NCBI GenBank assembly: GCA_025594325.1
Contig: JANHCV010000004.1
Coordinates: forward strand, 868,001 to 932,000
Reading direction: 5' to 3'
DNA length: 64,000 bases
Origin: Blastocladiella emersonii ATCC 22665
Lineage: Eukaryota > Fungi > Blastocladiomycota
The notes under the pieces are model-generated. The model was not told the DNA's origin and made no database searches. It worked only from the letters and a program-made list of their open reading frames with translations. How positions within the stretch are numbered: the first letter of the stretch is position 1; every line of letters starts with the position of its first letter. The position numbers and the translations under genes were made by a program. Positions 56,013 through 58,913 of the stretch are shown here, in pieces.

Positions 56013-56019
56013 TATAAAG
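56013..56019 (+). promoter_or_regulatory. TATA box TATAAAG
   Basis: About 70 nt upstream of the metacaspase ATG. Confidence 0.55.
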
Positions 56020-56087
56020 CTCGTCGCGCTCCCCTCGCTCGATGCTTCGATACCCAAGGATCCTCCCGCATCATATCAAGCAGAAAA

Positions 56088-57386
56088 ATGGTCAATTCCG
56101 CTCTGTGTTTCGGCCTCAATTACCCGGGCACCGAGGACGCGCTCCAGGGCTGCGACCTGGACGCCGGGACCATGACGGGTGTCGCCGCAAACATGGGCAT
56201 CGAGAACGTCCAGACGGTCACCGACGATGCCGGTCCGGTGACGCGCGAGCAGATTCTCGAGGGTCTTCGCGAGATGGTCGCTCAGGTGCGTTGGATCGAA
56301 GACCTGATCGCTCGTGGCCACGCTCACACGGCTCGCACCAAACCTGTATAGGCCCAGCCCGGCGACTCGCTCCTCTTCTCGTTCGCGGGCCACGGCGGCC
56401 AGACGGCCGATCTGAACGGCGACGAGCAGGACGGGCAGGACGAGGTGATTTGGGCCAGCGACGGCCCGGTCACGGACGACGAGATCCGCGCGATCCTGGC
56501 CGAGCTGCCCGAGGGCGCCAACATGACGATGGTGTACGATAGTTGCGCGTCGGGGACGATCGCGGACCTCGACCTTAGTGACACGGACATTCCCGGCAAC
56601 GTCGTGGTCATGTCGGCGACCGCGCCGAACCAGGAGTCGCTGGGCGGTGCCGACGGCGGCCGGTTCACCAACGCGCTCGCCGACGTGATTGCCAACAACC
56701 CGGGTGTCTCGTGGGCCGACGCCGCCGTGCTCGTCGACCAGGCCGACGGGAACCACGGCCAGTCCGCCAACGTGTCGGCCAACCGCCCAGAGCTCCTGTA
56801 CGAGCCCGCGTTTGGTCCCGTCGGCGAGATGTCGCGCGATATGCCCACGGACGCGGCCGCGATCGGGTCGGCGCTCGCGACCGAGGACCGCGACGGCGAC
56901 GGGTACGCGGAGCGCAGCGTCGAGACGTTCGAGGACGGGACCGTGGTCGAGCGCATCGACCTTGACGGCGACGGGATCACGGACGTGACGGCCGTGCACC
57001 TGTCGGACGGCACCACGTACATTGAGCACGACGCCAACGGTGACGGCGTCGCCGACACGATCGCGACGTTTGCGGCCGACGGCACCGTGACGTACGTGGC
57101 GACCGACGCGCCGGCGTACTCGGGCGGCGCCGAGGGCGCCGACGGGTACATGGAGACGCGCCTCGAGACCCACCTCGACGGGACGCAGGTCATTAGCGTC
57201 GACTACGACGGTGATTTGGTTCTCGACACGGTCGCCGACGCCAACAACGACGGTCTGATCGACGGCGCCATGGACGTGAACCTCGACGGCACCTCGGACC
57301 TCACGTACGCCCAGGATCTCGCGGCCGACGTGTCCGAGCTTGCTGCGATCGCCGACATTGACATTGGCGGCGACATATGCTGCTAA
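56088..57386 (+). CDS. Metacaspase (peptidase C14B), no prodomain, with C-terminal Dx[DN]xDG repeats; 410 aa, 2 exons
   Basis: ALCFGLNY...LQGCDLDA, FAGHG (His codon 56391), DLNGDEQDGQDEVI, YDSCASGT (Cys codon 56544) and p10 MSA...Q-S...GRFTNAL. Intron 56286-56351 (gtgcgt...tag) splices in frame. Confidence 0.88.
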
Positions 57387-57651: not shown

Positions 57652-58913
57652 TCAGTCACCACGCTCGACCTCCTCGCTGCACGCGAAAATCGTACCGAGA
57701 TACCGCCGGGGCTGATCCATGGCGAGCCCCGCAGCCGCCGGGTCGCTGGCCTCGATGAGCGCGTGGGCGGTGGCGGCGACGAGGTCGGACGCGGTGCACG
57801 ACTTGGCGCCCGCGGCGCCGGGCGTGGTGGTGAGCGAAACTAGGCCGTGCTTGCCCGAGGCGGCGGTCGGGCAGCGAGATGGGTGGCGGGTAGACGACGA
57901 CGACGACGCCGAGCGGGAACTCGGGCGGCGGCCGTGGTGGTGCAGCACCTCGATCTCGCCGGCGTCCGGACACCGCGCGGCGAGCGGGACGGGGTCCACG
58001 AGCGACCCGGGTGCCGCCGCTGCCGCCGCGACGGCGGGCATCCCCGCGCCGGCGTCGCCGTTGACCTGGTGCGGGTTGTATTTATCGACGAGGGCGGCGA
58101 GCGAGACGCACGCGTCATCGACGAGTTCCCAGTCGTCGTCGACGCGGACGTTGAGTCGTGGGGTGGGCGGGGATGCGGCGATGGCACCCGAGTGCTGCTG
58201 GACGACGCCGTAGAGGCGCCACGCGCCCGTCGAGAGGAGGGCGAGGCGGCCGACGTGGAACTCGCCTTCGAGGTAGTCGAGGTCGCGCTCGCTGCGCGAC
58301 TGGAGCCGGCTGACGAGCAGGACGGGCTCGTCGACGTGGATCTGCACCGCCGCGTCGTGGTAGCTGAAGGTCGACAGCCGCGCGAGCCAGCCCTGCACGC
58401 GGAACTTGCGGCCGTCGATGCTACGGTGGCCGGGTGTTAGTGTGAGCCCTGCGTGTGCGAGCAGCGAGGGAAAGGCGAAGCGTACATGAGGCAGCCGACG
58501 GCGTAGACATGAACCGACTTGACGCGCGACAGCGGCACCGACAGCGCGAGCCGCAGCGACGCGTGCGCGCGGTGGTACTCGGCGAGGCGCGGGAACCGCG
58601 GCGGCGTCGCGCTCGGCAGCGTCGTCAGCGACATGCCCGCGTCGCGCATGCCTACGCGCGTGCGCGTGGTACGGTACGTGGCTCGCGTCAGCTTTGCACG
58701 CCGAGCAGCATGAGCGGCGGCGAGGCGGCGAAGCGTACTCGGGTACTCGAGCGGGCGAGCGATCCACGGGTGCGCCATGGCCGTCGCCGTTGCCGGCGGC
58801 GCGTCAGTCGCGGTGGTCGAGGTTGCCGAAGCCGTCGCGGGCGCCGGTCCAGCGGGCGCGGGCGCAGGCGCGGCGAGGTTGGTCGCGGTGGTCGTAGTAG
58901 CGGTCGTTGCCAT
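57652..58913 (-). CDS. Hypothetical protein, at least 2 exons
   Basis: Thr/Ala-rich start. A gtacgc intron at about 58487-58421 joins VYAVGCLM to a beta-rich IDGRKFRVQGWL...LYGVV region. No domain recognised. Confidence 0.5.

Follow-up and report, generated by a model that had tools for sequence, protein, structure and literature searches.

In vitro, metacaspases need Ca2+ at millimolar concentrations, far above cytosolic levels. Calpain, a cytosolic Ca2+-dependent cysteine protease of the papain fold, carries a C-terminal penta-EF-hand domain that binds Ca2+ at multiple sites. Here, we describe a 410-residue protein (label P0001) of the fungus Blastocladiella emersonii ATCC 22665, the predicted product of a two-exon gene on the forward strand at positions 56088-57386 of the window, by which we mean the whole 64,000-nucleotide stretch analyzed (positions 868,001 to 932,000 of contig JANHCV010000004.1). 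Its best sequence and fold matches are the fungal type I metacaspases (Yca1/Mca1; CgMCA-I, PDB 7qp0/7qp1, 4f6o), with which it shares the His-Cys dyad, the motifs G-C-x-x-D and D-S-C, the signature G-H-G-G-Q-T-x-D-L-x-G-D-E-x-D-G-x-D-E, and all five Ca2+ ligand positions. Unlike these enzymes, it has no Pro/Gln-rich prodomain, has lost the loop of ~50-60 residues between p20 and p10 in which autoprocessing sites lie, and carries an extra 175-residue repeat tail that ends in Cys-Cys. The likeness to calpain is one of logic, a cysteine protease with a built-in (here predicted) Ca2+ domain, and not of ancestry, since calpain belongs to clan CA and P0001 to clan CD, and since the calpain domain consists of helix-loop-helix EF-hands whereas the P0001 tail consists of β-hairpin loops. 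Judged by its sequence, P0001 is a metacaspase closest to the fungal type I enzymes with its catalytic residues intact, and the architecture is that of a known enzyme and a known, uncharacterized repeat joined in one lineage.

The assignment of the protease domain is supported by both sequence and predicted structure. Pfam Peptidase_C14 matches residues 5-182 of the spliced protein (E = 1.6e-20), and residues 1-221 form a caspase-type domain in the AlphaFold model, with a predicted local distance difference test score (pLDDT) of mostly 75-93. Among solved proteins, HMMER against the PDB ranked C. glabrata MCA-I (E = 2.4e-29) and Yca1 (E = 3.6e-27) as closest in sequence, and a Foldseek search with the domain returned Geobacter GSU0716, the C. 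glabrata metacaspase, Yca1, T. brucei MCA2, and plant metacaspases at E values from 7.6e-17 to 1e-9. The catalytic His80 (codon CAC, 56391-56393) lies in F-A-G-H-G-G-Q and aligns to His182 of CgMCA-I, and the catalytic Cys131 (codon TGC, 56544-56546) lies in Y-D-S-C-A-S-G and aligns to Cys238. The acidic S1 motifs G-C-D-L-D-A and Y-D-S-C are likewise present and aligned; from the TbMCA2 structure, we take the Asp after the G-C motif and the Asp of D-S-C to be the residues of the S1 pocket. Alignment to CgMCA-I also places the canonical metacaspase calcium site in residues 86-109 (D-L-N-G-D-E-Q-D-G-Q-D-E ... T-D-D; 56409-56480). Ca2+ in the CgMCA-I crystal structure is liganded by Gly196, Asp198, Asp214, Thr242, and Asp245 (PMC9622860), and P0001 has identical residues at all five positions (Gly94, Asp96, Asp108, Thr135, and Asp138).

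The caspase fold begins at residue 4, leaving no room for a Pro/Gln-rich or zinc-finger prodomain, and twelve paralogues start in the same way. The p20 and p10 parts follow each other in the usual order across a linker of ~7 residues (query 141 to 148), compared with ~68 in Yca1 (204 to 272) and shorter than in any type I enzyme compared. The p10-like part, residues 148-221 (56595-56816), was recovered as a second HMMER segment against CgMCA-I 313-383 and by Foldseek, and the AlphaFold model places strands and helices at residues 149-216. The maturation sites of CgMCA-I, Arg54, Lys263, and Arg307 (PMC9622860), fall in the very segments that P0001 lacks, namely the prodomain and the p20-p10 loop. 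We infer that P0001 would be made as a "mature-like" single chain, controlled by Ca2+ without self-processing. An intact His-Cys caspase fold with no prodomain and a very short linker had been read from the sequence in a first-pass annotation of the locus, and that description holds in each of its parts. As a separate observation on composition, P0001 contains no lysine and only 10 arginines in 410 residues. Six paralogues also have no lysine and the others have one to five, with the exception of the 845-residue P0020, which has 14. High-GC3 open frames in the window (GC3 being the GC content at third codon positions) average ~2.4% Lys, which gives P ~4e-5 for zero Lys in 410 residues against a background that is crude, as these frames include some antisense ones. 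The absence of lysine in an Arg/Lys-specific protease could limit self-cleavage.

The protease domain is joined to the tail by a predicted disordered linker, residues 222-239 (56817-56870; pLDDT <50 for 222-240). This linker holds the pair Arg228-Asp229 (56835-56840): the Asp is invariant, and the Arg recurs in 8 of 14 aligned paralogues, among them all four that have both an intact dyad and the tail. The repeat tail proper spans residues 240-388 (56871-57317) and is built of 24-residue β-hairpin repeats carrying DxDxDG-type loops; residues 236-410, 175 in all, include 31 Asp and 10 Glu. Loops 1 to 3 are DRDGDGYAE (residues 245-253, 56886-56912), DLDGDGITD (269-277, 56958-56984), and DANGDGVAD (293-301, 57030-57056), and Asp293, Asp297, and Gly298 of the third are invariant in ten tails. 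These are followed by a degenerate loop at residues 318-333 (57105-57152) that is split by an 8-residue insertion (pLDDT <50 at 321-329); the insertion is found in P0001 and its four closest relatives, and P0006-P0009 have an uninterrupted D-x-D-G-D-G-[YF]-x-E at this place. Loop 5, DYDGDLVLD (350-358, 57201-57227), has Leu for Gly at position 6 in P0001 only, and loops 6 and 7 are DANNDGLID (362-370, 57237-57263) and DVNLDGTSD (374-382, 57273-57299). When the tail was shuffled 20,000 times, loops of the form D-x-[DN]-x-D-G-x-x-[DE] numbered 0.04 on average and 3 at most, compared with six in P0001.

When ten paralogous tails are compared, positions 1, 3, 5, 6, and 9 of the loops are near-fixed and positions 2, 7, and 8 vary. 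The DxDxDG calcium-binding motif class, reportedly delineated by Rigden and Galperin in 2004, is said to comprise a D-x-[DN]-x-[DN]-G loop plus a further acidic ligand, and the six loops of the tail, with their conserved positions 1, 3, 5, 6, and 9, have the sequence features of this class. The pattern of conservation is that of the DxDxDG class, making these predicted Ca2+ loops. Loops 1 to 3 are spaced 24 residues apart, and in the intervals between these three a pair of short strands is connected through a tight D-G-T turn. An AlphaFold model of the tail alone (pLDDT 81; predicted template modeling score, pTM, 0.77) has nine strands in an antiparallel, single-layer flat sheet, followed by two loops almost back to back and a helix at 389-399; the 9-residue loops of calcium-binding type occupy every second connection and line one edge of the sheet. 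The six loops and the short β-type segments between them had been noted before within an acidic stretch of about 170 residues, and both recur here, the loops exactly as quoted and the segments as predicted strands flanking them. The C-terminal 22 residues (389-410, 57318-57383) comprise the helix, which is predicted in both the tail-only and the full-length AlphaFold model, and the end G-G-D-I-C-C. The terminal Cys-Cys (57378-57383) recurs in separate clades, in 8 of the 17 B. emersonii family members, and may, as a guess, be a site of S-acylation or other lipidation. It is preceded by G/D-rich residues, and a distant caspase-domain match from Chromera velia, P0015, ends in FFCC.

The gene model on which these features depend is as follows. 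Exon 1 (56088-56285, residues 1-66) starts at the first in-frame ATG (56088), a start position shared by the paralogues, and encodes the start of the caspase fold, with β1, helix 1, and the S1-pocket motif G-C-D-L-D-A. An intron of 66 nucleotides (56286-56351) comes next; its boundaries are GTGCGT...TATAG, and it conforms to GT..AG, is in frame, and has TAG as its last three bases. Exon 2 (56352-57386) encodes residues 67-410 in 344 codons that stay open after the intron and ends with TAA at 57384-57386. The spliced product (56088-56285 plus 56352-57383) is identical to a 410-residue NCBI protein named "Ca(2+)-dependent cysteine protease", to which the exon-2 translation is 100% identical. The intron is supported by three observations: Pfam Peptidase_C14 runs in register over both exons (exon 1 covers positions 4-60 of the profile and exon 2 positions 66-194); the closest paralogue, P0002 (70% identical), is encoded by an uninterrupted, intronless gene of 1233 nucleotides (L002:10001-11233); and the alignment to P0002 crosses the exon junction without a gap. 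The presence of the intron in one gene and its absence from the other amount to an intron gain or loss inside a young gene family.

Homology and selection point to a gene that is spliced, expressed, and functional, a conclusion that forms part of the overall explanation set out below and shares its moderate confidence. GC3 over the tail part of exon 2 is 0.91 in frame, compared with 0.69 and 0.43 in the other frames. In comparison with P0002, the ratio of nonsynonymous to synonymous substitution rates (dN/dS) is 0.55 in the protease domain, 0.36 in the tail, and 0.14 in the last 22 residues, values best read relative to each other because GC3 is so high that dS may be underestimated. Identity to P0002 is likewise higher in the tail (77%) than in the protease domain (65%), and by these sequence measures constraint on the tail is no weaker than on the protease domain. 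A candidate TATA box (TATAAA, 56013-56018, forward strand) lies 70 nucleotides upstream of the ATG and is a consensus match only. The first-pass annotation had argued for function from the in-frame intron and the TATA box; these say little on the matter, and the real evidence lies in dN/dS and in conservation among the paralogues.

The fusion was sought widely. Exhaustive HMMER searching with a profile of the tail found 4075 proteins at E <= 1e-3, 340 of them at E <= 1e-10, and when a caspase-domain hidden Markov model built from the family was run over the best 150 of the 4075, it found only B. emersonii proteins (three paralogues). Word-indexed searches of 5.8 billion proteins with exon 2, the tail region alone, and the family profile returned 17 B. 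emersonii family members and two proteins of Catenaria anguillulae without DxDxDG loops; the other matches were weak (metagenomic, bacterial, and one Chromera velia caspase-domain protein), and none had both parts so arranged among the 8000 candidates scored in each search, where even canonical metacaspases were absent. Scans of GTDB genomes and JGI metagenomes gave only caspase-domain matches, which ended at residue 182-185. A bacterial protein of 707 residues, P0172, was considered as a second fusion and rejected: its gene adjoins a WXG100 gene, and the protein contains no caspase domain. A literature search found no description of B. emersonii metacaspases or of a metacaspase fused to DxDxDG repeats, and the one DxDxDG match that it gave concerns a different, diatom protein. 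Within the scope of these searches, which leave out a direct search of the Allomyces, Paraphysoderma, and Coelomomyces genomes, the sequence of metacaspase and repeat tail in one protein has been found so far only in B. emersonii. The statement that fungal type I enzymes have no such appended domain agrees with this distribution, in that no fungal protein outside B. emersonii was found with the fusion. The further proposal that the architecture is new stands only in part. The fusion itself was found neither in fungal, bacterial, or metagenomic searches outside B. emersonii nor in the literature, but its repeat is of the DUF6802 type, a known module, and archaeal caspase homologues with EF-hand-type motifs have already been reported: a caspase-family p20 with an EF-hand (DxDxDG-type) motif occurs in 7 archaeal orthocaspases (PMC6426788). 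We also found a metagenomic protein, P0016, with Peptidase_C14 and one EF-hand-like loop. These prokaryotic caspase homologues differ from P0001 in having no p10 region and a single motif rather than an array.

The relatives of the tail lie for the most part in a different kind of protein. Nine of ten paralogous tails match Pfam DUF6802 (PF20615) weakly, with a best E value of 2.5e-6, and the long paralogue P0020 reaches 31.2 bits, above the gathering cut-off of 27. FG-GAP is matched by four of ten tails (best E = 2e-4), in short, sub-threshold matches. Integrin FG-GAP repeats bind Ca2+ by the same hairpin-loop pattern. In the ESM Atlas, bacterial clusters labeled DUF6802 or EF-hand align with the tail at a template modeling (TM) score of ~0.6 over 120-144 residues, and a Foldseek search with the tail found no solved structure at E <= 1e-3. 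Most of the best 150 of the 4075 tail-profile matches are very large proteins (1000-4500 residues) with 10-19 matched stretches, and the few that were traced are bacterial or metagenomic, one of them adjoining a WXG100 gene. The DUF6802/FG-GAP-like repeats of large bacterial proteins have the same D-x-D-G-D-G loops between short strands as the P0001 tail; unlike P0001, these proteins have no caspase domain (among the best 150 of 4075 matches). The literature search found no paper that mentions DUF6802. The tail repeat is a widespread, uncharacterized type and not a new module.

Other identities for the tail were rejected. It is not an EF-hand array, as the 9-residue loops are flanked by strands and do not form the helix-loop-helix with a 12-residue loop, and the Pfam matches cover the loop only and lie below cut-off. 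Dockerin, Excalibur, and RHS were also set aside, their matches being short, sub-threshold, and confined to loops, and the predicted elements being strands rather than helices. An FG-GAP/integrin-α propeller, which is closed and has blades of ~60 residues, is ruled out because the tail has a 24-residue period and an open single-layer sheet; only the Ca2+ hairpin loop is common to both. Horizontal transfer of the tail from bacteria was considered and is not claimed; giant bacterial proteins score high through many summed repeats. P0172, with its tail-like repeats, is encoded (Logan SRR27608054 contig) in a cluster opening with a weak WXG100 match, which hints at a link between type VII secretion and some of the proteins that bear such repeats.

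The B. emersonii family as a whole bears on what the tail may do. Among its 17 members, four (P0001, P0002, P0003, and P0006) combine an intact dyad with the tail, and two (P0169 and P0170) have the dyad and no loops. The remaining eleven, encoded on other B. emersonii contigs, have lost the catalytic His and/or Cys (P0004-P0012 with the exception of P0006, which has the dyad, and P0014, P0020, and P0168), with Cys replaced by Ser, Thr, or Gly and His by Arg, Leu, Met, Ala, or Lys. None of the eleven has lost the tail, although loops are few in the group of P0010, P0012, and P0014. A tree built on the protease domain divides these dead members among at least four well-supported groups, one of them sister to an active pair, on a backbone without resolution. 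The family is very acidic, with a predicted isoelectric point (pI) of ~4. An unusual member is P0020, encoded on a contig of 2,021,495 bp, in which a protease domain inactivated by Lys and Ser in the dyad positions precedes a Pro-rich A-P-G-F-P-Q-P repeat and two P0011-like tail units of ~250 residues. A 2019 survey stated that pseudo-variants seemed restricted to prokaryotic orthocaspases (PMC6426788); by the loss of their catalytic residues, the 11 B. emersonii members are eukaryotic pseudo-metacaspases. The trypanosomatids offer a parallel, as TbMCA4 is a pseudopeptidase (Proto et al. 2011, as cited in PMC12914765). Trypanosomatid MCA4/MCA5 resemble the B. emersonii family in including a eukaryotic dead metacaspase paralogue and a regulatory C-terminal domain (TcMCA5, PMC12914765). 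The trypanosomatid extensions are unlike the P0001 tail in that they are not Ca2+-loop repeats. TbMCA4, moreover, is lipidated at its N terminus.

The explanation that we favor, and in which we have moderate confidence, is that a functional gene encodes a prodomain-less, single-chain derivative of the type I enzymes that is joined to a predicted calcium-loop β-hairpin domain with a Cys-Cys end, and that this domain serves as a Ca2+-dependent scaffold. No autoprocessing would be needed, and ordering of the p20 site by Ca2+ would switch the enzyme on directly. Along one edge of its flat β-sheet, the hairpin loops of the tail, which are of integrin/FG-GAP type, would take up another six or seven Ca2+ ions. 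The tail would stiffen or fold as Ca2+ rises and would act as a scaffold or docking arm that holds the protease, or its dead paralogues, where local Ca2+ is high. The docking site might be a membrane, if the terminal Cys-Cys is S-acylated. A number of points weigh against this explanation. Loops of this DxDxDG type are usually weak Ca2+ binders of extracellular proteins, and P0001, lacking a signal peptide, would be exposed to the low Ca2+ of the cytosol. Of its loops, one has its Gly replaced by Leu and another is split. Against DUF6802, P0001 itself scores 14.9-16.6 bits, below the gathering cut-off of 27, and VIA-align matched the tail only to generic single-layer sheets (OspA, the CPAP TCP domain, and MORN; Z 8.9-7.5). 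The flat-sheet model is built on an alignment of 10 sequences, and S-acylation is a guess. The full-length AlphaFold model (pTM 0.54, linker pLDDT <50) does not predict the position of the tail relative to the protease, so that no contact between tail and active site can be claimed. Finally, the published genome annotation was made ab initio with funannotate, and no RNA data are mentioned (PMC9730499); a look-up of RNA runs for this stretch returned none.

Several other readings account for part of the evidence. It is tentative, although conceivable, that the tail acts apart from proteolysis, as a high-capacity, low-affinity Ca2+ buffer or as a Ca2+-dependent structural or adaptor repeat, in a family that is losing its protease. 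Retention of the tail by 11 of 17 members that are pseudoproteases, with losses of the dyad in several clades, is what such a role would predict, as are the higher identity (77% versus 65%) and lower dN/dS (0.36 versus 0.55) of the tail and the pI of ~4 across the family. However, P0001 and three others keep His and Cys, the dN/dS of 0.55 in the protease domain is still below 1, and the S1 residues and every p20 Ca2+ ligand are kept, which would be unexpected were the protease dispensable. The same observations, retention of the tail by dead paralogues and a tail at least as constrained as the enzyme, argue for some function independent of catalysis. They also make it unlikely that an autoinhibitory or protease-regulating role of the tail is the whole story, and an autoinhibitory module, if taken as the sole role, as the first-pass annotation allowed, is weakened accordingly by the eleven dead members that keep it. 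A more specific form of this idea, which we regard as unlikely, is that the tail and linker constitute an autoinhibitory or release module, in which a Ca2+-activated self-cut after Arg228 would free a soluble 228-residue protease from a membrane-bound tail. The predicted disordered linker (222-240) has Arg228 as its single Arg, in a protein with no Lys and 10 Arg, the Arg228-Asp229 pair is conserved (Arg in 8 of 14, Asp invariant), as is the terminal Cys-Cys, and T. cruzi MCA5 is reportedly subject to negative regulation by its C-terminal domain (PMC12914765). However, the dead paralogues P0007, P0008, P0012, and P0014 also retain the Arg, which leaves self-cleavage at this site weakly supported; P0004 and P0005 have His there, and there is no predicted contact between tail and active site to support masking.

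We consider it improbable that the loops bind no calcium at all and that the tail is an acidic β-repeat for binding proteins, surfaces, or other cations, its likeness to the DxDxDG class being structural only. The literature yielded no study of DUF6802, the EF-hand and FG-GAP matches are short and below cut-off, and the loops are flanked by strands, all of which this reading accommodates; against it, conservation falls precisely on the positions that hold ligands and Gly in the class, and the same hairpin loop is established to bind Ca2+ in integrin FG-GAP repeats. Least credible of all, and very improbable, is a wrong gene model or a dead gene with an untranslated tail. The ab initio annotation, the look-up that returned no RNA run, and an out-of-frame upstream ATG might be cited in its favor, but they stand against 344 open codons after the intron, an in-frame GC3 of 0.91, a tail dN/dS <0.4 against an intronless paralogue, and the presence of the same architecture in >10 paralogues. 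At its boldest, our favored explanation could be extended to a protein in which activation by self-cleavage has been replaced by a calpain-like multi-Ca2+ sensor arm and a lipid anchor that together read Ca2+ microdomains at membranes, with possible release at Arg228 and with the dead paralogues as decoys or regulators. We hold this extended version to be doubtful.

The finding is confined so far to one species and is known from sequence and models. Nevertheless, P0001 would be a simple system in which to study how metacaspases sense Ca2+ in cells, as it has neither a prodomain nor an autoprocessing loop, keeps the canonical Ca2+ site, and has its own predicted array of Ca2+ loops and a possible membrane anchor. 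It would allow activation by Ca2+ to be separated from self-cleavage and local Ca2+ microdomains to be tested as the physiological trigger. The family offers a set of eukaryotic metacaspases, some active and some dead, that share a scaffold, and a first functional handle on the uncharacterized DUF6802 repeat.

Additional open frames surround and overlap the gene. The out-of-frame ATG, 46 nucleotides 5' of the start, opens a frame of 166 codons (56042-56542, forward strand) that overlaps the gene. Downstream, a 371-codon open frame on the reverse strand (57652-58767) has no Pfam match. Two antisense frames run across the gene, one of 365 codons (56076-57173, reverse strand) and one of 289 codons (56324-57193, reverse strand); they are most likely by-products of codon bias in a genome of 66% GC rather than genes.

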